From positions 62,001 to 126,000 of the IMG/VR virus record IMGVR_UViG_3300003877_000001: a DNA stretch of 64,000 nt, one strand, 5' to 3'. Below are positions 3,273 to 62,668 of this stretch, one piece after another. Numbering within the stretch: position 1 is the first letter of the stretch; every line of letters starts with the position of its first letter. The position numbers and the translations under genes are program-made. The notes beneath the pieces are model-generated. The model saw only the letters and a list, made by a program, of their open reading frames with translations. It was not told where the DNA came from and made no database searches.

Positions 3273-4453
3273 TAGTAAAAAACCAAGAAATTCCTACAAC
3301 AAAAAGTAGTAAAAAAATATTACAATTTAAATGTGATGATTGTAATCTTCTTTATGAAAGAAGGTGGGATTCTAGAATCAACTCAAATCTAAAACAAGGT
3401 AAAGATTTATGTAGAAGTTGTGCAAATAAAAACAGTTTTAATATAGATATCAATAAAAATTATGATAACATAAAGATTGAAAATTCATATACAATAACAT
3501 GTAAAAAATGTCAGAAAGAATTTAAAGTACCTAAGCACGAAAAGAATAGAATTTTTTGCTCAAAAAAATGTCAAATTAGTGGTATAAAAAGATCAAAAAA
3601 TTTAAACATTACAAATTGTTTGATTTGCAATAAAGAATTTTCACATTATGGTGAAAGGATTGTTTGCTCAAGAGAATGTTTAAGTGAATATATGAGTGAA
3701 AAGAGACTTAATGAAAACAATCCTTCTTGGATTGAAAATAAAGAAACTAATGTTTGCAAAAGATGTAATGAATCTTTTGAATATACAAGAAGAAACCTAC
3801 ATAAAGGACAAAAAAGAGTATTTTGTTCGTTAGCGTGTTCACGAAATAATGGAAACAATAAAGAATTCATTGAAAATAATGATAACAACTATAAATACCC
3901 TAGAGTTTTCAATAATAAATTGAAAAATAGAATTAAAGATAGAGATGGTCATAAATGTCAATTATGTTCATCAGAGAAAAATTTGGAAATACACCATATC
4001 GATTATGATAAAAAAAATTGTGAAGATGATAATTTAATTACATTATGTAAAAAATGCCATAATATAACTAATCACAATAGGGGGTTTTGGTTACAAGTAT
4101 TTATTGGATTACAATCTAACTCAAAAATAGTTAAAAAGGGTTGGGGTTTAGAAATACATATTGTTAATCATAACGAATATTGTTTGAAATATTTAATATT
4201 CTTTAATGGTAAAAAGTTTAGTTGGCATAAACATCTGCTAAAAAAAGAATTATGGGTATGTATGTGGGGTAAATTTGAATGTGTTATAAATACAAATGAA
4301 CATTATGAATATTTAAAATTATCTAAAGGAGATAAAATAGAAATACTACCATCAACAGAACATCAAGTTCAGGCATTGACAAATTCAATACTTATGGAAG
4401 TATCCACAAAAGATTTTCTAGAAGATTCAATAAGAATAGAAAAGGGCGATTAA
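3269..4453 (+). CDS. Zn-ribbon/HNH endonuclease fused to a C-terminal cupin (sugar isomerase-like)
   Basis: CxxC/FCS repeats, RDGHKCQLC..IHHIDYDKKN..NLITLCKKCH, then VKKGWG.E...FSWHKH..KKE...EVST.D..EDSIRIEKGD. Confidence 0.75.
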   Translation: MIVKNQEIPTTKSSKKILQFKCDDCNLLYERRWDSRINSNLKQGKDLCRSCANKNSFNIDINKNYDNIKIENSYTITCKKCQKEFKVPKHEKNRIFCSKKCQISGIKRSKNLNITNCLICNKEFSHYGERIVCSRECLSEYMSEKRLNENNPSWIENKETNVCKRCNESFEYTRRNLHKGQKRVFCSLACSRNNGNNKEFIENNDNNYKYPRVFNNKLKNRIKDRDGHKCQLCSSEKNLEIHHIDYDKKNCEDDNLITLCKKCHNITNHNRGFWLQVFIGLQSNSKIVKKGWGLEIHIVNHNEYCLKYLIFFNGKKFSWHKHLLKKELWVCMWGKFECVINTNEHYEYLKLSKGDKIEILPSTEHQVQALTNSILMEVSTKDFLEDSIRIEKGD

Positions 4454-6402: not shown

Positions 6403-6938
6403 AAAATTTAGAAAAAAGGATGTACTTTTTAGTTCCGTATAATATTTCAGACATACAAAAATCGATCCAAGCAGGACATGCAGCATTAGAATATGCACAT
6501 ATACATGGTAATGATGAAGAATATATAGATTTTATTGAAAACTGGAAAACTTGGATTATATTAAATGGTGGTACAACAAATTCAAATTTAGATTCTGAAG
6601 AAATACCACGTGGCACTCTTGATAGAGATTTTCTTTCAATAATTGAATATAATGAAACAACCAAACATGGTGTTATTTCACCAAAAATTAAATATTCTAG
6701 ATTTAATGAACCAGATTTAAATAATGCATTAACAGCAGTTTGTTTAGTTGTAGACGAAAGAGTCTTCAATAGAGAAGATTATCCTGATTTTAGAGAATGG
6801 ACAAAAAAATGGGAACATGAAGCCGAATATTTTAATTGGAGTGTTGAAAAACAAATCGATGAATATATTAAGGATATTGGTATAGATTATAAAACTTACT
6901 TCCTTAAAGAATTATTAAATACTAAAAAACTAGCATAA
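6399..6938 (+). CDS. peptidyl-tRNA hydrolase II-like protein
   Basis: IQAGHAA and F.EPDLNNALTAVC motifs. Confidence 0.7.
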   Translation: MKNLEKRMYFLVPYNISDIQKSIQAGHAALEYAHIHGNDEEYIDFIENWKTWIILNGGTTNSNLDSEEIPRGTLDRDFLSIIEYNETTKHGVISPKIKYSRFNEPDLNNALTAVCLVVDERVFNREDYPDFREWTKKWEHEAEYFNWSVEKQIDEYIKDIGIDYKTYFLKELLNTKKLA

Positions 6939-7160
6939 TGAATAAAAGAGACATTCTAGCCGATATGGAAGGTGAATGGTTATTTGCAGACGGTTTTGAT
7001 GAAGCAATTATTAGTATATATGATGAAAAGGTGGTATATTCACTTAATGTATTGAAATATTAAATACTGATTTTGGTATGTCTGAAGAAGAAGCAATTGA
7101 ATATTATTATTTCAATGTTGTTGGAGCATATGTGGGTAAGAAAACACCAATATTTGTATA
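6938..7160 (+). pseudogene. frameshifted conserved small phage protein
   Basis: LFADGFDEAII... then in another frame MSEEEAIEYYYFNVVGAYVGKKTPIFV*. Confidence 0.5.
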
Positions 7161-7238
7161 AGACGAATTATTTGTTTAACAAGTAAAGTGTTAAATTTAT
7201 TCCATTTTAAATTTTCACAGTATTTATGTTAAAGAAAT

Positions 7239-8048
7239 ATGAAGAATCTAAAATGTTCTGGAATATATGTTATTGAAAATATTATTAATAATAAAAAATA
7301 TATAGGGTCTTCCAAAAATATTCATAAAAGAATTAAAAAACATTTTGAATTATTAAAAAGAAATAAACATCATTCACTTTATTTACAAAATTCATATAAT
7401 AAACACGGTAAATCTAATTTTAAATATTATCTTTTAGAAGATTGTCTAACTGAAAATTTATTAAAAACCGAACAAAAACATTTAGATAATATTAAAAATT
7501 GGAAAAATTCATTTAATATGTCAAAAATTGCAAAGGGAAATTCTTTTGATTTATCTACACACCCTAATGAAATAGAAATAAGAAAAAAAATTAGTGAAGC
7601 AAGTAAAGGTAGGGGTAGTAAACCATTTATTATTGATAATAATAAATATAAGACACTTAAAGATGCTGCAAACGAATTTAATGTTGATATTAAAACAATT
7701 TCATATAAAATAAAAAATTGGAAATATAAAAATTATTATTATGAAAATAAACCAAAGGAAGGTGAATTTATTAATAATAAATATGGGTGTTATTGGTATA
7801 AACCAAAAATTAATAAAGAGAAGAAAATAAATTATTGTGTTTGTGGGAATAAAATAACATATAAAGCAATTAATTGTCGTAAATGTGCTGGAATTAAATA
7901 TGCACATACTAAAAAAATAATAATTAATGGAATTATTTACGATAGTATATCAATTGCAGCTAAAGATTTAAACATATCAAAACCACTATTGTTTTATAGA
8001 TTAAAATCAAATACAATACAATTTAAAAAATATCAATATGTAAATTAA
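7239..8048 (+). CDS. GIY-YIG homing endonuclease
   Basis: SGIYVIENIINNKKYIGSS; NUMOD-like C-terminal repeats. Confidence 0.9.
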   Translation: MKNLKCSGIYVIENIINNKKYIGSSKNIHKRIKKHFELLKRNKHHSLYLQNSYNKHGKSNFKYYLLEDCLTENLLKTEQKHLDNIKNWKNSFNMSKIAKGNSFDLSTHPNEIEIRKKISEASKGRGSKPFIIDNNKYKTLKDAANEFNVDIKTISYKIKNWKYKNYYYENKPKEGEFINNKYGCYWYKPKINKEKKINYCVCGNKITYKAINCRKCAGIKYAHTKKIIINGIIYDSISIAAKDLNISKPLLFYRLKSNTIQFKKYQYVN

Positions 8049-49199: not shown

Positions 49200-49270
49200 C
49201 GTCCATTGGTGTAATGATAACATGATCGGTTGTCTCCCGATTGCCGAGGGTTTGATTCCCTCATGGACGG
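49200..49270 (+). tRNA. tRNA-Asp(GUC)
   Basis: ATCGG-TTGTCTC-CCGAT; G73; pyrimidine at position 37. Confidence 0.8.
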
Positions 49271-49272
49271 CA

Positions 49273-50264: not shown

Positions 50265-50336
50265 GGAGCATTGGTCTAACGGCTAGGATATATGACTATC
50301 ACTCATAGGGTAGGGGTTCGATTCCCCTATGTTCCG
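50265..50336 (+). tRNA. tRNA-Asp(AUC)
   Basis: TATGA-CTATCAC-TCATA; GGAGCAT/ATGTTCC stem, G73. Confidence 0.88.
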
Positions 50337-50346
50337 CACTGGTCAT

Positions 50347-54500: not shown

Positions 54501-54586
54501 TGTGAGTTGGAGAAGTTGGTATCTCGCTGGTTTCATAAGCCAGAGTCCCTACGGGGTTTACGGGGGTTCGAATCCCTCACTCGCTA
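54501..54586 (+). tRNA. initiator-like tRNA(CAU) with extra variable hairpin
   Basis: 1:72 mismatch; CTGGT-TTCATAA-GCCAG; variable CCC-TACG-GGG. Confidence 0.85.
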
Positions 54587-54817
54587 CTAAAAAGAATTAA
54601 AAATAAATAAGAAAATTGTAACATATTAAAAATATTTACGTATATTTGTAATATAACAGACAACAAAAGTTCCTATAATTTATATTTGGATAAAAAATAC
54701 TTTTCGTCTGTTTTTTTATAAATTAAAACATAAAGGTAAATGATGTTCCTATAAAACTCAATAGGGGAAACCCTATTTTTACTGTAAATACATCTCACCT
54801 TTTTAAAAAATTAAATT

Positions 54818-56572
54818 ATGAAAACTTTAGAACTATTTAATGCGGTTGTAAAAAAAGATACAAAAGATAATGTTTTTGTATCAGAAGATGGATATATTAT
54901 CGAATCTGGTGCTTTATGGGCAAAAGATAGAATTGTAACCTATTATAATAGTCGTAGATTAAATGGTAATGATTTAAATAAAACATTTCATAAATCATGG
55001 TTAAAAATAAAAAATAGTTCAAGATATGAACTATTGGTTGATCAAATAAAACATTATATATCTACATATGGTAGTGGATTTAAAGATGATGTTTATATCC
55101 CTGATGAAGTATTAGATATTTCAGGATTAAAAATATCATTTAAAGTTGTTAAAGCATATACTAAAGATGAATTAATTGATAAATCATTATCATTACTTCA
55201 ATCTGGTATTGCTTTGAAAGAAGAAACAATAAATGATTTATTATCAATTCTTGTAGATGAACTTGATTATGAATTTACTGGTAAAGAAAATATTCGTAAC
55301 AAAGAAGCAATAATTAAAATTGCAGATATATATGGGGTATTACCAATAGATACTATGGAGTTTTTTAGATATATTATCTATCGTACAACAGGACAATCAT
55401 TATTAATTAAAAATTATAAAATGATTGAATTGATAAAAGATAGTAATTATAATCCATCTGCACAATTTAAGAAATTTGGATTAGAAAAACTTTCTGAAAT
55501 ATTTAATAGATTTAAGCCGTTATTTTTAGCTTTTAAACCTAAATGTAGTGGTACTATTAATAGAATTTCAAAGTTATCTAAAAAATATCATAAGCCACTT
55601 CTTAGTAATCCATTAAATGAAGTAACTTCGGTTACATTTAATGAAGGTGATGATCACTGGTTAGATAATGCAACACCATTTGCTTTATTTAAAGCATTGT
55701 CTGCTTGTTGGACAAGAATGAATGGACAAGATGCTTTTGTATATAGAATTAGAAATGGTAAATCATTTGCTAAGATGAATTCTACTGATGCAGGTATTGC
55801 AGGATATAATTATGGACATATTCTTAATTATATTAAAAATAGATTTGATCTTTCAGGTAAGAAAATATTTCTTCCAGAAGATGTAGAATATGCTTTACCA
55901 ACATCTGAAAAGATGTACGTAGGTAATGTTCCAACAGGAACAAGATTCTATGGTAATGCTCTTGCTGTTGGTATTTATTGGAAAAACTCTTGGGGTGCAA
56001 CTGACCTTGATTTATCTGGTTTGAATATCGGTGGAAAAGTCGGTTGGAATTCAGATTATAAACAAGGTGGATCATTGTATTTCTCTGGTGATATTACCAA
56101 CGCACCTAATGGTGCTGTTGAGTATCTTTATGCAAATAGAGGACTTAGTGAACCAACTTTGGTAATGAATAATGTATTTAGTGGAAACCCTGATTCAGAA
56201 TTCAAGATCATCGTAGGTAAAGGTGATAATATCAATAAGAATTATATGATGAACCCTGAAAAGTTGTTCGTGGATATTAAGACACAATCAGTTCAAACTC
56301 AAAGTGTGTTAGGTATATTTCTTCCAGTTGGTAACGAGAGACAATCTTTTGTTATTTTGAACTTCGGTTCTGGTAGAGAACATATTTCTAGTTATGGTGA
56401 AGTTGCAAATATAACAACAAAGGCACTTTATCAACAATGGAACAATGCACTTACTTTGAGAGAAGTAATTGGAAAATTAGGTGTTGAATTTGTTACTGAT
56501 CCTGAAAAGGCAGATAATGATTTAAGTTTAAATACAATTGAAAAAGATTCTATAATGAATCTTTTTATATAA
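54818..56572 (+). CDS. stress-related protein with C-terminal TerD-like motifs
   Basis: GIYW....DLDLS...GWN....FSGDITNAP.GA.EY. Confidence 0.6.
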   Translation: MKTLELFNAVVKKDTKDNVFVSEDGYIIESGALWAKDRIVTYYNSRRLNGNDLNKTFHKSWLKIKNSSRYELLVDQIKHYISTYGSGFKDDVYIPDEVLDISGLKISFKVVKAYTKDELIDKSLSLLQSGIALKEETINDLLSILVDELDYEFTGKENIRNKEAIIKIADIYGVLPIDTMEFFRYIIYRTTGQSLLIKNYKMIELIKDSNYNPSAQFKKFGLEKLSEIFNRFKPLFLAFKPKCSGTINRISKLSKKYHKPLLSNPLNEVTSVTFNEGDDHWLDNATPFALFKALSACWTRMNGQDAFVYRIRNGKSFAKMNSTDAGIAGYNYGHILNYIKNRFDLSGKKIFLPEDVEYALPTSEKMYVGNVPTGTRFYGNALAVGIYWKNSWGATDLDLSGLNIGGKVGWNSDYKQGGSLYFSGDITNAPNGAVEYLYANRGLSEPTLVMNNVFSGNPDSEFKIIVGKGDNINKNYMMNPEKLFVDIKTQSVQTQSVLGIFLPVGNERQSFVILNFGSGREHISSYGEVANITTKALYQQWNNALTLREVIGKLGVEFVTDPEKADNDLSLNTIEKDSIMNLFI

Positions 56573-56719: not shown

Positions 56720-56803
56720 CGTGAGTTGGAGAAGTGGCATCTCGCTGTCCTCATAAGGTAGAGTCCCTACGGGTTTACGAAGGTTCGAGTCCTTCACTCG
56801 CTA
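56720..56803 (+). tRNA. initiator-like tRNA(CAU) with extra variable hairpin, copy 2
   Basis: C1:U72; CTGTC-CTCATAA-GGTAG; variable CCC-TACG-GG. Confidence 0.85.
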
Positions 56804-57460
56804 CTAAACTATAAGAATATGAAAAATAACATACCGCTTGGAAGCGGAATACATGTTAAATACTGTTACAGGTTCGTTGAGAACTTCACGTTTTTCTATC
56901 TCGTTAATCGAACAAGGTTAATCACCTTTTGCGGATCACGAATAGAATTTATCGGTGATTCCTCTCCCCCTTTATAGTCAAGATACTAATTATACTTGTG
57001 GATGTGCATGTATTAGAATGATATTAAATCATTTTTATGCACGATCCATTTAGAGGTGCTAAATCAAATTTCCAAATAAAGAAGTTTCTTAGAAATAATT
57101 GGAACATTAATCATAAAAAATATAATGTATCAGATAGTTATTATTCCGATTTAGTATTTGATCCAAAGATGGATAGAAAACGTTATTGGTTAGCATATAA
57201 GAAGGGGGATTAATTCTTCTTTCTTTTTAAAAATTTTTAAACTATATTTGTATTATGAGAAGTTTTGATTAAAGCAAAAAAATAATGGATAATACAATTG
57301 GAATATTTTTAATAACAAAGTTGTGAAAGTATGGTTGAAATTGATGGTTAAAAACCATTTCCAGAAGTAGATAAATTTAAATGGGTTGATTTTGATGATG
57401 CATTAGAATTAATTCATGATACACAAGTAATAGCATTAAATGAATATATAAGAAAATAAA

Positions 57461-58108
57461 ATGAAAATATTATTAATTAGTGATAGTCATGGACTACACA
57501 AAGCATGGGAAAAAATCTTCCCCCTCCCTAAAGTTGATATGATAATTCATGCAGGTGATCTAACTAATGTAGGTGCAATTCATGAAATGAATGAATTTAT
57601 GTTTTGGTTTAAGAATCTTGATATTGAATATAAAATAATGATTGCAGGAAATCACGATAAAGGTCTTGATAATTTTAACAGATATACTATGCTTGATATG
57701 ATTCAAGATAGTGAAATCCATTATCTTGAAGATTCTGGAGTAGAGATTGAAGGAATTAAGTTTTGGGGTTCACCTATGACACCACCATTTTTCAATTGGG
57801 CATTTATGCGTGACGAAGAACAAATCAAAAAGCATTGGGATGCAATTCCTGATGATACTGATTTTCTAATCACTCACGGTCCTGCCAATGGTATTTTGGA
57901 TTGGGTTGATTATAAAAATGGTGGAAGTGTAGGGTGTCCTTATCTTCTTGAAACAATTCAAGAAAGAGTGAAGCCTAAATATCATGTATTTGGTCATATA
58001 CATGAGATGTATGGGACTAGAGTAGTTGGTGAGACTACACATATATGTGCATCTGTTTTAGATGGTAGATATCATCCTGTTAGATCAGGCATTATAATTA
58101 ATTTCTGA
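57461..58108 (+). CDS. calcineurin-like metallophosphoesterase
   Basis: SDSH, HAGD, AGNHD, THGP, FGHIHE. Confidence 0.93.
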   Translation: MKILLISDSHGLHKAWEKIFPLPKVDMIIHAGDLTNVGAIHEMNEFMFWFKNLDIEYKIMIAGNHDKGLDNFNRYTMLDMIQDSEIHYLEDSGVEIEGIKFWGSPMTPPFFNWAFMRDEEQIKKHWDAIPDDTDFLITHGPANGILDWVDYKNGGSVGCPYLLETIQERVKPKYHVFGHIHEMYGTRVVGETTHICASVLDGRYHPVRSGIIINF

Positions 58109-58148
58109 ATCTCTTGCAATTGTCAGGAGATTTATGTATTTTTGAATT

Positions 58149-58418
58149 ATGGTAATAGAAAATAACAAAAAAGAAATAAAATTTTTAAAATCACTAGGTT
58201 TTAAAAAAGATGGTTTTGATGATAATTTAGGGGTTTGGTATACAAAAAAAATTAAACATTTCGTTCTAGGTAAATGCCTAATAGATGTCCAAGATTTTCA
58301 AAATAAAGCAATGATTAATATTGATACTATGGACGATAATCAAAATTATGTTACTATAACAGAAAACATACCATATAATAGAGAAAATCTTTTAATGGTA
58401 ATTGGGTTTTTAACATGA
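58149..58418 (+). CDS. hypothetical protein
   Basis: ORF track. Confidence 0.5.
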   Translation: MVIENNKKEIKFLKSLGFKKDGFDDNLGVWYTKKIKHFVLGKCLIDVQDFQNKAMINIDTMDDNQNYVTITENIPYNRENLLMVIGFLT

Positions 58419-58447
58419 GTAAATTTTTAAAAGATAAAGGATGATAT

Positions 58448-58948
58448 ATGTCATTATTATTAAGACATAAACCAGAGAAAGAAGATTTAAATCTTGATTC
58501 TCAAGGTTATGTCTTAGTTGATGAATTAATAAATAAACTTGAAATCACAATTACTGATCTCAAGTGGATTATCGATAATAATGATAAAAAAAGATTTAGT
58601 TTTAATGCTGATGAAACAATGATACGTGCAGCACAAGGACATTCTATTGATGTTGATCTTAAAATGAAAAGAATATTACCACCAGATTTATTATATCATG
58701 GTACTACAATAGCTAATGCTGAAAAAATACATAAGAGTGGTTTAAATAAAATGAATAGAAATCATGTTCATTTAACAGATAATAGAGAAACTGCATATTC
58801 GGTAGGAATGAGATATGCCAAATATCAAAATAAAATTTGGATGATTACTATTGATGCAAAACAATTGAATAAAGATGGTTATGAATTTTATAAATCTGAA
58901 AATGGAATATATTTAACAGAAGAAGTACCTTCAAAATATTTTATTTAA
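58448..58948 (+). CDS. kptA: RNA 2'-phosphotransferase (Tpt1/KptA)
   Basis: LLRH.P, DKKRF, IRAAQGHS, LYHGT, RNHVHL. Confidence 0.93.
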   Translation: MSLLLRHKPEKEDLNLDSQGYVLVDELINKLEITITDLKWIIDNNDKKRFSFNADETMIRAAQGHSIDVDLKMKRILPPDLLYHGTTIANAEKIHKSGLNKMNRNHVHLTDNRETAYSVGMRYAKYQNKIWMITIDAKQLNKDGYEFYKSENGIYLTEEVPSKYFI

Positions 58949-59202
58949 TCTACAATGACAATAGGATATAAATACTTTCTATTAACTCGACCAAAGACCA
59001 TACTATCATTTCTAACTTTAGTATCCCTAATTAATATACCTTCGATAATTGAAATACGATCAATATAAACAATAATACGATGATCACCATCATCATAATA
59101 CCATGCAGAATTAATTGGATATTTATTTGTTTTCTTTAATGTAACACATGAATATGGTAATAATAATAATAATAAAAATAATATGTATTTTTTTAGTTTC
59201 AT
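58945..59202 (-). CDS. putative lipoprotein
   Basis: Signal peptide with lipobox-like YSC. Confidence 0.55.
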   Translation of the reverse strand: MKLKKYILFLLLLLLPYSCVTLKKTNKYPINSAWYYDDGDHRIIVYIDRISIIEGILIRDTKVRNDSMVFGRVNRKYLYPIVIVD

Positions 59203-59292
59203 AAGTTTAGATTATATAAAAATAAATACTTATTTTTCTTATGTAAAATTTTATAAAATGATAAAAAAATATATAATAAAATATAGAATAAA

Positions 59293-60327
59293 ATGATTAA
59301 TAAATCAGAAATCTTTAAAAACAAATCACATTGGGTGAATATGACAGAAATTGAATTATTATCATATCAAACAAAAATTTTTAAATACTATTGTGAGAAT
59401 GGATTTCCATATTATCCAACGGATGATGAATATCGTAAAAGGGAATTTAATAAACTTCAAAAATATAATTATTCTGAATTAATTGAAAATGGAATTGTTA
59501 AACAAACAATGCATGGTCTTGGTCTTGCATGGTCATACTTTCCACACTCATTTGATGTTAAATGTAATAATAAAAAAACACCCATAGAAGTATTTAATAA
59601 TGATGATTTTTTTATGGAAGTGATTAGTAAACGATTACAAATAGGAACATTTATTTCAGATGCTGGAATTCGAAAAATGTTAAAAATGTTTACCAATACA
59701 CAAGGTGTTTCTAATTTTAGACCAACAGCAGCAGCAGCAATATATGATAAATATGCAGCTAATGGTGTTGTATGGGATATGTCTGGTGGTTGGGGAGGTA
59801 GAATGCTTGGTGCTGCGATAAGTAGCGTTAAGAAATATATTACAACTGAACCATCAATAAAAACATTTCTTGGATTGGTTGATTTATCTAAATTAATATC
59901 AAAAGTTGGTGTTAATATGGAATTTGTTTTATCAGCACAAGGTAGTGAAATATTTATACCTGAAAAAAATTCATTAAATTTATGTTTTACATCTCCACCA
60001 TATTTTGATTTAGAAAAATATTCGGATGAAGATAGTCAAAGCTATATTAAATATAGTAATAAACAAGATTGGGTTAGTGGTTTTTTAAAAAACACTTTTA
60101 ATAATTGTTATTACGGTTTAAAAAATAATGGACACATGTTAATTAATATTGCTGACTCAAAGAAAAATAACAATATTTCACTAGAACAAGCAACTATCGA
60201 TACAGCAATTAGTTGTGGATTTAAACATGTTGACACATTAAAATTGGCATTATCAAATCCAAACATGAAAAATAGAACATCAGCATTTAAATATGAACCA
60301 ATATTTGTTTTTAAGAAATATGAGTAA
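59293..60327 (+). CDS. DNA methyltransferase (N4-C/N6-A type)
   Basis: D.SGGWGGR, FTSPPYFDLE.Y. Confidence 0.85.
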   Translation: MINKSEIFKNKSHWVNMTEIELLSYQTKIFKYYCENGFPYYPTDDEYRKREFNKLQKYNYSELIENGIVKQTMHGLGLAWSYFPHSFDVKCNNKKTPIEVFNNDDFFMEVISKRLQIGTFISDAGIRKMLKMFTNTQGVSNFRPTAAAAIYDKYAANGVVWDMSGGWGGRMLGAAISSVKKYITTEPSIKTFLGLVDLSKLISKVGVNMEFVLSAQGSEIFIPEKNSLNLCFTSPPYFDLEKYSDEDSQSYIKYSNKQDWVSGFLKNTFNNCYYGLKNNGHMLINIADSKKNNNISLEQATIDTAISCGFKHVDTLKLALSNPNMKNRTSAFKYEPIFVFKKYE

Positions 60328-60406
60328 ACACAATATTGGTACTGCGCATCAACATTATAGAGGAATTGAAAACAAATAACCTAACTATTTAAAGTAAATA
60401 AAATAA

Positions 60407-60901
60407 ATGAAAAAACATATTCTTAATGAAAGAATAAGAGGCTCTGAAATTAGATTAGTAGGACATCAAATTTATGAAAATAATATTATACCAACTGCCG
60501 AAGCATTAAATTTAGCAAATACAGAAGGGTTAGACTTGGTATTAATAAATCCAAACGAGTCACCTGCTATTTGTAAGATTATGGATTATAATAAATTCAC
60601 ATATAATCAAAAAAAGAATGAAAAGAAAAGTAGTTCTCCAAAACTAAAAGAAATAAAATTTACTCCAAATATTACTGACAATGATTTGAATGTAAAAGTA
60701 AAACAAGCTAGAAAATTTCTTGAAAAGGGAAGTGTAATTAACATACATGTATTCTTTAAAGGAAGAGAAATTGCACATAAAGATAGAGGTAAGGAAGTAT
60801 TATTTAAATTCTTAAACGAACTTATAGATATTGGTATATTTAATTTGGATATAGTCTTTAAAGGAAAAAGAATTATCCACCAAATAAGACCTAAAAGATA
60901 G
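60407..60901 (+). CDS. infC: translation initiation factor IF-3
   Basis: NE.IR..EIRLV, GLDLV.I.P...P..CKIMDY.KF, KEIKF.P.I...D, F.GRE. Confidence 0.95.
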   Translation: MKKHILNERIRGSEIRLVGHQIYENNIIPTAEALNLANTEGLDLVLINPNESPAICKIMDYNKFTYNQKKNEKKSSSPKLKEIKFTPNITDNDLNVKVKQARKFLEKGSVINIHVFFKGREIAHKDRGKEVLFKFLNELIDIGIFNLDIVFKGKRIIHQIRPKR

Positions 60902-60954
60902 TAACCATTTTATAATATTTTTAATTTGAAAGAGTATTTATAGGTGATAATGAT

Positions 60955-61590
60955 TTGAAATTAATTGAAATGGTTCAAAAATGGTTGGAATATGATGGTA
61001 AAATATATCACAAAAAAACAACACATGAATTAGCACATTCAATCACTATTACATCAAAAAATATGGTTACAAAATTAAATGAACATAATGTAACCCCAAA
61101 CAAAAGTTTTACGTATAAATATAATAACATTGCATTGTTTAATGAATTTTTACAGGGTTATGTTGAGGGTGATGGTTGTGTTGGAATATATAATAGTTCA
61201 ACAACTGACTATTATTATATTAGTTTTTTTGGTAATGAAGATTTTAAAGATAGTATTATAAATTTATTACCTACAAAACCTAAACTAAGAAAAGTTAATA
61301 ATAAATTTTATGAAATTAAATTTTTGGGTAAAATAGGAATTGAATTTAGTGATTGGTTATAGAATGACCCAATATATATTGATAGTCCTAAATATAAAAA
61401 ATATATTGACTTTAAAAAAAATTATTTAACTAAGACAAAATATTATAAATATGGTTTATTAAATAGAAAAATAGATAATTTATTAAATGAAAATGTAGAA
61501 CCAAAAATTATAGCAGAAAAACTTAATATTAATAAAAGGACTGTATATAATTATAAATATAATAAGAAAAATGGAAAAAATACTTACTAA
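60955..61590 (+). pseudogene. degenerate LAGLIDADG endonuclease
   Basis: FLQGYVEGDG; the frame continues past TAG at 61360 into an HTH-like tail. Confidence 0.6.
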
Positions 61591-62668
61591 AATAGAATGG
61601 AGTGTTATTAATGAATATATTGAAAAGGGTTTATTAATTACTAATAAACACCCAACTAAAGATATATGGGTTCTAAATTATTCTAAAACATGTGCATTTG
61701 AAAAGGAATGGGATTTAATTACATTATCTTGTCGTGGACTTTTTGTTGACATCGATGGTAATATTGTTGGTCGAAGCATGAAAAAATTCTTCAATTTAGA
61801 AGAACACGATCCTTCTGATATTCCAACTGATTTATCATTTGAAGCATTTGAAAAAATGGATGGTTCATTGGGTATTTTATTTAATTATGAAGGTGATTGG
61901 ATATTTGCTTCAAGAGGTTCATTTGAATCAGAACAAGCCATTAAAGGTGGTGAAATCATGCTTAATATTGAAAATTCTTATAGATTTTTAAATGGTGATA
62001 ATACATATGTATTTGAAATTATATATCCTGAAAATCGTATTGTTATTGATTATGGTAAGACTGAAGATTTGGTTCTTTTAGGTGTTATCAATACTGATGG
62101 TGGTGATGAAATGTCATATGATGATATGGTGTATAATCACTCTGATGAATTTACTATTGTTGAAAAGTATGATGTAACATCTGATATTTCTAAATTAAAG
62201 GAATTAGAAGAAGATAACAAAGAAGGATTTGTTGTACGTTATTCTAATGGCTTCCGTGTAAAAGTAAAATTCGATGAATATTGCAGATTACATAGAATCG
62301 TTACTAACGTATCTAATAAGACAATTTGGGAATCATTGAAAAATGGTGAAGGATTGGATGAAGTTATTGATAGAGTTCCTGATGAATTCTACAATTGGGT
62401 TAGACGTACTGAAAAGGGTTTAAATGATATGTATATTGAAATTGAAGTTGAAACATTACGTGAATTCGTTAGGGTAACTAATTTAGTTAGTTTGAAAAAT
62501 GGATTTGATCCTTTTGAAAGAAAGAAAGAATTTGCTTTAATAGCAAAAGAATTTAAACATTCTGGATTATTATTTTCTATGTATAATAATAAAAATTATT
62601 CTGAAGCAATTTGGAAAATGATTAAACCAGACTGGTCAACACCATTTAGAGATGGGTATGAAAATTAG
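61571..62668 (+). CDS. RNA ligase (T4 Rnl1-like)
   Basis: CRG, KFFN, EKMDGS, FE, EGFVV, RVKVK..Y..LH. Confidence 0.92.
   Translation: MEKILTKIEWSVINEYIEKGLLITNKHPTKDIWVLNYSKTCAFEKEWDLITLSCRGLFVDIDGNIVGRSMKKFFNLEEHDPSDIPTDLSFEAFEKMDGSLGILFNYEGDWIFASRGSFESEQAIKGGEIMLNIENSYRFLNGDNTYVFEIIYPENRIVIDYGKTEDLVLLGVINTDGGDEMSYDDMVYNHSDEFTIVEKYDVTSDISKLKELEEDNKEGFVVRYSNGFRVKVKFDEYCRLHRIVTNVSNKTIWESLKNGEGLDEVIDRVPDEFYNWVRRTEKGLNDMYIEIEVETLREFVRVTNLVSLKNGFDPFERKKEFALIAKEFKHSGLLFSMYNNKNYSEAIWKMIKPDWSTPFRDGYEN

Follow-up and report, generated by a model that had tools for sequence, protein, structure and literature searches.

Two hairpins lie in tandem directly in front of a phage gene whose protein belongs to no assigned family, and the locus raises the question of whether they are a leader of that gene, hairpins without a role, or copies of an RNA that works together with the protein. 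In this study, the DNA analysed (hereafter, the window) was a stretch of 64,000 nucleotides, positions 62,001 to 126,000, of the IMG/VR virus record IMGVR_UViG_3300003877_000001. The gene encodes a protein of 584 amino acids (P0001), and we call the element common to both hairpins the handle. The phage record is 325,854 bp long and is rated complete by CheckV, the window has a G+C content of approximately 27% and holds 20 tRNA genes, and the public DNA runs with this phage are from a hydrothermal vent metagenome. We found that the window hairpins are two copies of one widespread, covarying structured RNA. Judging from sequence comparison, the handle is the predicted binding site of the protein encoded just downstream.

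Two copies of one covarying structured RNA

The two hairpins share one layout (Table 1). An outer stem of 6 bp (P1) is followed by a 3-nt A-rich bulge on the 5' side, opposite a single C on the 3' side, and by a second stem of 6 bp (P2), which always ends with a G-C and then a U-A pair. Next come UCCUAUA(A), a variable part, AAAU (AWU in relatives) and the closing strands. The initial annotation, made from the sequence alone, had described two hairpins with a common bulged-stem layout, and the sequence is as described; P2 proved to have 6 bp instead of 5, and the bulges are 3 nt versus 1 nt. The predicted fold of the 178 nt at 54640-54817 consists of exactly these two hairpins (-36.1 kcal/mol, z = -4.6), and none of 200 shuffles was as stable. 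The exact 10-mer GTTCCTATAA occurs in both hairpins and nowhere else in the window. Copy 1 has a short variable loop and a run of seven T on its 3' side, and the 3' end of copy 2 lies 15 nt from the ATG of the 584-codon open reading frame (ORF).

The bacterial sample consisted of 80 Bacteroidota loci with a homologue of the 584-amino-acid protein (41 from Chryseobacterium), in which handle copies were called by a strict pattern-and-pairing criterion. Each locus has one to five tandem copies. Alignment A2 holds 91 short copies, namely 89 bacterial rows and the two window rows, and the covariance model R1 was built from it. Pairing was found in 99.4% of the A2 cells, a figure that is partly a product of the selection, and in 39-56% of the cells in slid-partner controls. 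Changes on both sides occurred at 9 of the 12 pairs, and the covariation score was 0.565 compared with 0.251 for shuffled data, with none of 500 shuffles reaching 0.565. The pair at columns 10-67, which was not imposed by the selection, was GC in 48 rows, AU in 34, GU in 4 and another combination in 5. The viral scan used alignment A1. In the 79 viral matches of R1, which were outside its training set, 96% of the cells pair in an alignment that was fitted to R1 and hence leans towards the structure; double changes were seen at 11 of the 12 pairs, and the score was 0.66 versus 0.25. Conservation is highest in the gene-proximal copy, whose 3' end lies 10-25 nt from the start codon in most loci.

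The initial annotation had read covariation from the two hairpins of this one locus, and the bacterial and viral alignments bear out a single covarying motif. It had also set a check beforehand, namely whether the motif is missing upstream of homologues. The motif is present upstream of the gene in 80 of 80 Bacteroidota loci and was found in 28 of 35 viral loci. This confirms that the window hairpins belong to one structured RNA.

A box just before hairpin 1 had been pointed out as well. The octamer TATATTTG, a possible Bacteroidota-type -7 box, does stand there. It is weak evidence for a promoter, because the pattern TAnnTTTG is not enriched in the AT-rich window (99 observed versus 125 expected) and because a second TATATTTG lies within the variable loop of copy 1 (54681-54688). 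The box was therefore dropped as a promoter.

In many bacterial copies, the variable loop contains UUGG or UUCC. These two types are complementary by eye, and kissing of neighbouring variable loops was considered. The mean best run was 2.10, compared with 1.72 for shuffled pairings, which was unconvincing, and the idea was given up.

The record IMGVR_UViG_3300003876_000001 (138,979 bp) encodes a protein 100% identical to that of the window, and its two handles and flanking tRNAs are also those of the window. It probably represents a second assembly of this phage or of a very close one. A megablast search of the phage collection gave no nucleotide match.

Table 1. Features at and around the handle locus (positions in the window). 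The R1 scores of the two copies are partly by construction, both being among the training rows of the model.
Feature	Position	Strand	Remarks
tRNA, CAU anticodon, long variable arm	54501-54587	+	directly upstream of the handles
TATATTTG, possible Bacteroidota-type -7 promoter box	54641-54648	+	7 nt 5' of copy 1
Handle copy 1	54656-54711	+	sequence, fold, covariance model R1 (55.9 bits)
Copy 1, P1	54656-54661 / 54706-54711	+	6 bp
Copy 1, 5' bulge AAC	54662-54664	+	
Copy 1, P2	54665-54670 (AAAAGT) / 54699-54704 (ACTTTT)	+	6 bp
Copy 1, TCCTATAA / UCCUAUAA	54671-54678	+	
Copy 1, bulged C	54705	+	
Handle copy 2, gene-proximal	54732-54802	+	sequence, fold, covariance model R1 (49.8 bits)
Copy 2, P1	54732-54737 / 54797-54802	+	6 bp
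Copy 2, bulge AAA	54738-54740	+	
Copy 2, P2	54741-54746 / 54790-54795	+	6 bp
Copy 2, TCCTATAA / UCCUAUAA	54747-54754	+	
Copy 2, inner hairpin, GAAA-capped	54760-54777	+	flagged terminator-like
Copy 2, bulged C	54796	+	
584-amino-acid protein gene (P0001)	54818-56572	+	N-domain ~1-372, predicted TerD-fold C-domain ~378-537
tRNA, CAU anticodon, long variable arm	56720-56804	+	directly downstream of the 584-amino-acid protein gene
Calcineurin-like phosphoesterase (RNA-end healing type)	57461-58108	+	PF00149, E 1.7e-17
Tpt1/KptA RNA 2'-phosphotransferase	58448-58948	+	PF01885, E 1.3e-46
T4 Rnl1-type RNA ligase	61571-62668	+	PF09511, E 1.1e-19

One protein family and three guises of the handle

The handle was found where the protein family is found. 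In the whole phage genome, R1 matched both window copies only, and in four complete or draft bacterial genomes (3.4-6.6 Mb) all matches at E <= 0.01 fell at the single locus adjacent to the homologue. Each of the 79 viral matches has the orientation of the gene, and nearly every one lies no more than 400 nt upstream of it; the viral loci with a handle include some whose proteins are only 31-35% identical. Five of the seven viral loci that gave no match have almost no upstream sequence. Some copies stand elsewhere. In Synechococcus phage S-CRM01, four copies precede g174 and one follows it. S-CBWM1 has a copy shortly before gp22 and another between two tRNA genes, the gut phage Phass-1 (OQ749652.1) has four copies approximately 1.3 kb downstream of its homologue, and a further viral locus (L125) also has copies downstream of the gene. 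Because of the downstream copies in Phass-1, S-CRM01 and L125 and the copy between tRNA genes in S-CBWM1, we believe that the handle is more than a leader.

Comparison of the loci showed the handle in three guises. In the first, it forms plain hairpins, as in the window, and the same two-copy architecture ("AA") is also present in Pedobacter and Chitinophagales loci. In the second, found in a subset of the bacterial and cyanophage copies, a distal look-alike of a T-arm (a 4-5-bp stem with a UUCGAnU loop) is followed by a GNRA-capped hairpin and then by a strand with a conserved UGGUU. Studies have shown that YrlA, a bacterial Y RNA that mimics tRNA, has T-arm, acceptor-like and D-arm modules in this order (Chen et al. 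2014, PMC4201824), and the module order of the second guise matches it. Of the YrlA layout, a bulged terminal helix with a tRNA-like module, all handle copies have the helix, and a subset that does not include the window copies has the module.

In the third guise, which occurs in 52 of the 80 bacterial loci and in 7 viral loci, a tRNA-like gene heads the array. Its acceptor stem covaries (19 distinct pairs), its D-arm and T-arm are normal, and the handle takes the place of the anticodon loop with its strands permuted: AAUU, the 3' strand of P2, C, a short capped P1, AAA, the 5' strand of P2, and UCCUAUA. These genes are missed by ARAGORN. The chimera at 3652-3760 of Chryseobacterium-group locus L028 scored 47.3 bits against the tRNA model RF00005, with a 45-nt insert replacing the anticodon loop. 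In some Flavobacteriaceae chimeras, an anticodon hairpin (CAU or CAA) is retained next to the handle; the Chryseobacterium versions have lost the anticodon loop. We also considered that the inserts might be introns. Excision restores a perfect CAU or CAA arm in a few Flavobacteriaceae; it fails to do so in others and in every Chryseobacterium copy, and the intron reading was therefore not adopted. The comparison of the three guises indicates that the constant element is a two-bulge handle of approximately 35 nt and that the part attached to it varies.

Rfam 15, searched at the gathering threshold and at E <= 10 with the window, with L008 (a locus that has a T-arm copy) and with L028, gave no family for the handle. 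The Y RNA and YrlA models did not match the window leader, L008 or L028 at E <= 10, and neither ARAGORN nor Rfam called the window copies as tRNA.

The partner protein and its neighbourhood

P0001 was assigned to no family by Pfam (E <= 1), PHROGs or NCBIfam, 52 diverse members of its family had no match in Pfam at E <= 0.01, TerD and TROVE included, and a sequence-profile search of the PDB with the protein returned nothing. A word search gave at least 2,889 homologues, mostly on Bacteroidota chromosomes (62-82% identity), and an exhaustive profile search gave 1,492 family clusters at 50% identity. In cells, the protein is sporadic (5 of 301 sampled Flavobacteriaceae genomes), which fits an accessory, horizontally moved module.

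The full-length predicted structure was of moderate quality, with a predicted local distance difference test (pLDDT) value of 72. Residues 378-537 of this model superpose on TerD (VIA-align, Z 7.9 with 2kxt and 7.1 with 2qz7, 135-136 residues aligned), and this part retains the TerD-type acidic motifs DLDLS and SGD. According to the model, the C-terminal domain is a TerD fold. The TerD model of Pfam (PF02342) matched neither P0001 (E <= 1) nor the 52 members (E <= 0.01). In the ESM Atlas, the protein sits among viral hypothetical clusters, one of its feature neighbours is a TerD-bearing cluster, and it has a query-normalised template-modelling (TM) score of 0.75 to the actinobacterial RING-domain family MXAN_6230/SCO0854; NCBIfam gave a weak partial echo of the same family, over the TerD part only.

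The N-terminal 372 residues, modelled alone with 52 diverse sequences, gave a mostly helical structure with a pLDDT of 86.5. The best match of a VIA-wide fold search with this domain had a Z of 5.4 over 70 residues, the matches were unrelated helical fragments, and no convincing relative was found. Foldseek searches of the PDB with the whole model and with the N-domain model returned nothing, and Ro60 structures were not among the fold-search matches of either. The name "TerD-like", which the initial annotation gave to the gene, thus suits the C-terminal domain, and the N-terminal domain has no detectable relative. The TROVE-like fold that it had suggested looking for is absent by Pfam, the PDB profile search and the fold searches, and homology to Ro/TROVE was rejected as far as these methods can see.

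The conserved family is rich in invariant Arg, Lys, His and Asn. In the 52 members, which are 33-59% identical to the window protein, the invariant positions of the N-domain include N161, E163, R231, N248, H258, R312 and K365, and those of the TerD domain include its acidic motifs, DxD and SGD.

Downstream of the gene and on the same strand, within the tRNA region of the phage, an RNA-repair/translation cluster (57461-62668, +) also holds a methylase-like gene and a full-length IF3 homologue. The phage genome was searched for RtcB and RlaP, and neither is present. RtcB adjoins the gene in 51 of the 80 Bacteroidota loci, usually directly upstream on the same strand, and 11 of these 51 are outside the Chryseobacterium group. 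An Rnl1-type ligase is nearby in 4 loci beyond those 51, RlaP (PF10127) in 23 of the 80, usually downstream, and a divergent WYL-WCX regulator in 42-44 of the 80. Several Bacteroidota loci have 7-19 tRNA genes within 4 kb, and tRNA arrays are also present at many viral loci and in cyanophages.

The two flanking CAU tRNAs of the window are paralogous, have a class-II-type arm, are 85-87 nt long and carry a mismatched 1-72 pair. A class-II architecture with a CAU anticodon is unusual. The CAU anticodon recurs in the handle-bearing chimeras of Flavobacteriaceae. Elsewhere in the window, ARAGORN called a tRNA-Asp with the anticodon ATC (A34) at 50265-50337 (+), and a normal tRNA-Asp(GTC) lies nearby at 49200-49271. 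The ATC version may have been miscalled, or it may be a variant that evades anticodon nucleases. In one viral locus (L114), a tmRNA gene (6732-6986) stands immediately 3' of the homologue and adds an element of translation rescue to this neighbourhood.

Genes of nicotinamide adenine dinucleotide (NAD) salvage stand just upstream of two homologues: PnuC and a NadR-like gene in Zobellia (L005, 3854-5471), and NamPT and phosphoribosyl pyrophosphate (PRPP) synthase in Phass-1 (L003, 1-1842). Together with the NAD+-using Tpt1 of the window, they hint at a link to NAD/ADP-ribose chemistry. In the Chryseobacterium-group loci (L028-L086), genes of the HopJ family, for histidine phosphatase and for a CobT-like phosphoribosyltransferase recur (36, 17 and 16 of the 80 loci, respectively), which may be lineage synteny instead of a functional link.

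A proposed Ro/Y-RNA-like particle and its alternatives

Published work describes Y RNAs in tandem beside rsr and rtcB (PMC4201824), Ro/TROVE and a tRNA-like partner as a platform for RNA repair in some jumbo phages (PMC7824862), and co-regulation of tRNA arrays and rtcB when translation is under stress (Santamaria-Gomez et al. 2021, PMC8421152). By analogy, we lean towards the view that the handle and the protein form a Ro/Y-RNA-like particle whose protein and RNA are both unrelated to those of Ro/Y RNA, and that the gene-proximal copy is possibly an autoregulatory operator; on balance we consider this somewhat probable. The handles of the window would be minimal copies of a portable RNA handle that is bound by the downstream-encoded protein. 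The RNAs would be separate, stable products processed from the operon transcript, and the chimeras appear to have all that RNase P and the 3' processing enzymes need. In relatives, where a mimic of the tRNA elbow or a complete tRNA body is attached to the handle, the protein would be brought together with enzymes that recognise tRNA (ligase, nucleotidyltransferase or processing enzymes) or with nucleases that cut it; the phage copies have the handle only. The particle may act in repair, responding to cleavage of tRNA or other RNA as Ro/Y RNA particles are thought to do, and through the gene-proximal handle the protein may also be able to repress translation of its own mRNA.

We also speculated, more tentatively, that this is an undescribed class of ribonucleoprotein (RNP). 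In it, a new N-domain and a TerD fold would recognise a two-bulge handle that is grafted, in either strand order, onto hairpins, permuted tRNA mimics and tRNA anticodon arms. In phages and in the mobile islands of bacteria, such a particle would link RNAs of tRNA shape to the machinery of repair or counter-defence, and the Ro/Y-RNA principle would have been invented twice, independently.

Several points weigh against the proposed particle. Pfam and the fold searches found neither TROVE nor a recognised RNA-binding domain in the protein, which could be an enzyme acting on the handle RNAs instead of a scaffold. Both window copies are without the tRNA-like module, so that it is from relatives that the adaptor part of the model is drawn. 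Two viral loci (L102 and L103) with intact upstream sequence have no handle within 420 nt in the covariance model scan. The public runs that hold this phage are DNA runs only, one of which is probably its source, with no RNA-seq run among them. The near-constant placement directly 5' of the ORF also fits a leader that acts purely in cis.

In such a leader, the handles would be operators in the 5' untranslated region (UTR), for the protein or for another factor, which control the translation or stability of their own mRNA, and there would be no separate RNAs. The position and strand of nearly all copies fit it, as does the last copy, the most conserved one, ending so close to the ATG. However, up to five tandem copies are unusual for an operator, copies lie downstream of or far from the gene in Phass-1, S-CRM01, L125 and S-CBWM1, and the handle sits inside tRNA-like genes whose acceptor, D and T arms are intact and covary, a sign that stable RNAs may be processed from them. 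We consider this leader unlikely. A tandem riboswitch would make each handle an aptamer for a small molecule linked to repair or NAD (e.g., NAD+, ADP-ribose derivatives or 2',3'-cyclic nucleotides) that controls the downstream gene. The nadA (NAD+-I) riboswitch has a layout of tandem bulged stems, which the handles recall, their internal loops are highly conserved between covarying stems, and NAD-related genes lie near the locus in Zobellia, Phass-1 and the window. On the other hand, no Rfam riboswitch or aptamer model matched at E <= 10, the GC-richer relatives, phages among them, show neither a U-tract nor a conserved terminator or sequestering helix 3' of the last copy, no conserved expression platform is visible, and the copy number varies from one to five. 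We regard a riboswitch as quite improbable. Both readings are weakened by the copies away from the gene and by the handles inside tRNA bodies.

It is equally improbable, in our view, that the RNAs are substrates or decoys, with the protein or a host nuclease cutting or modifying the UCCUAUA loop or the chimeras, or with the RNAs soaking up anticodon nucleases. The tRNA arrays and ligases around the locus would suit this, an intact anticodon stem-loop (CAU or CAA) survives next to the handle in some chimeras, and array tRNAs co-regulated with rtcB have been proposed as sponges of toxin RNases (PMC8421152). However, the loss of the anticodon loop in the Chryseobacterium chimeras weakens the anticodon-decoy idea, Pfam and the fold searches found no nuclease fold or motif in the protein, and a decoy role leaves unexplained why the handle, and not the tRNA part, is conserved. 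Finally, the hairpins could be incidental, either terminators after the upstream tRNA or chance hairpins of AT-rich DNA. The run of seven T after copy 1 and the terminator-like inner hairpin of copy 2 would fit, but that inner hairpin is the only part so flagged, U-tracts are not conserved in the cyanophage copies, the motif is specific to one locus per genome, and compensatory changes extend across Bacteroidota, cyanophages and gut phages, including GC-richer genomes without U-tracts. This covariation across phyla contradicts the incidental reading, to which we give a negligible chance.

The handle is new to Rfam 15, its protein family is absent from Pfam, NCBIfam and PHROGs, and the working principle resembles that of Ro/Y RNA. 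In both systems, which occur in bacteria and in phages, noncoding RNA genes lie in tandem beside the protein gene, often upstream of it, in RNA-repair operons with RtcB. YrlA and YrlB are likewise modular, with a bulged helix formed by the ends and a tRNA mimic whose T-arm, acceptor-like hairpin and D-like strand come in the order also seen in some handle relatives. In contrast to Ro60 (Rsr), the handle protein has no TROVE or von Willebrand factor A (vWA) domain by Pfam or fold; it joins an N-domain without detectable relatives to a TerD fold. The handle conserves GUUCCUAUA with an AAA/C bulge, whereas the Ro-binding element of Y RNA is GGUCCGA, and some members are complete tRNAs whose anticodon arm holds the handle; the window copies have no tRNA module. 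The likeness to Ro/Y RNA that the initial annotation proposed thus holds for the repair and tRNA-array context and for the module order of YrlA, and finds no support in the sense of a homologous Ro particle or of membership of the Y RNA or YrlA family.

Other known systems share parts of this arrangement. Burroughs and Aravind, in a 2016 abstract, reportedly tied a "novel tRNA-like molecule" to an SPFH/Band-7 module in RNA-repair systems. By that description, a scaffold protein with a cognate tRNA-like noncoding RNA in ligase-centred repair operons would be common to both; no Band-7 gene was seen among the conserved handle neighbours, and the RNA reported there may overlap with the handle. Among the publications consulted, none describes the handle or the protein. 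Unlike members of the TerD family, the domain in the handle protein is fused to an N-domain of 370 residues, in a context of RNA repair and tRNA arrays, not of ter operons. The NAD+-I riboswitch is likewise a tandem of two similar bulged stem-loops within a 5' leader; the handle differs in its lack of an Rfam match, its conserved nucleotides, its variable copy number and its presence in tRNA-like genes and 3' of the ORF. The tRNA arrays of PMC8421152 are likewise horizontally spread, with embedded hypothetical and RNA-repair genes, and neither the handle motif nor the protein family is described there.

The handle would add to Rfam a structured RNA family present in at least hundreds of Bacteroidota and phage genomes, and would give the first functional lead for an unannotated protein family of approximately 1,500 clusters at 50% identity. 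If the proposed particle is real, the pairing of a scaffold protein with a tRNA-like RNA in RNA repair arose more than once. For phage biology, it would be an unstudied component of the tRNA-array and RNA-repair toolkit of large phages, presumably directed against host defences that cleave tRNA. Annotation is affected as well, since ARAGORN passes over handle-bearing tRNA genes and short annotated ORFs overlap handle arrays in deposited phage records. For example, the four handle copies of Phass-1 (L003, 6989-7453) overlap a hypothetical-protein coding sequence at 6995-7294 of the locus, which is probably a misannotated noncoding RNA array. Similarly, four copies in S-CRM01 (L001, 3513-3965), of which one bears a T-arm mimic, occupy the space 5' of g174 and overlap the minus-strand ORF g173c (3788-3934), which is probably not a gene.
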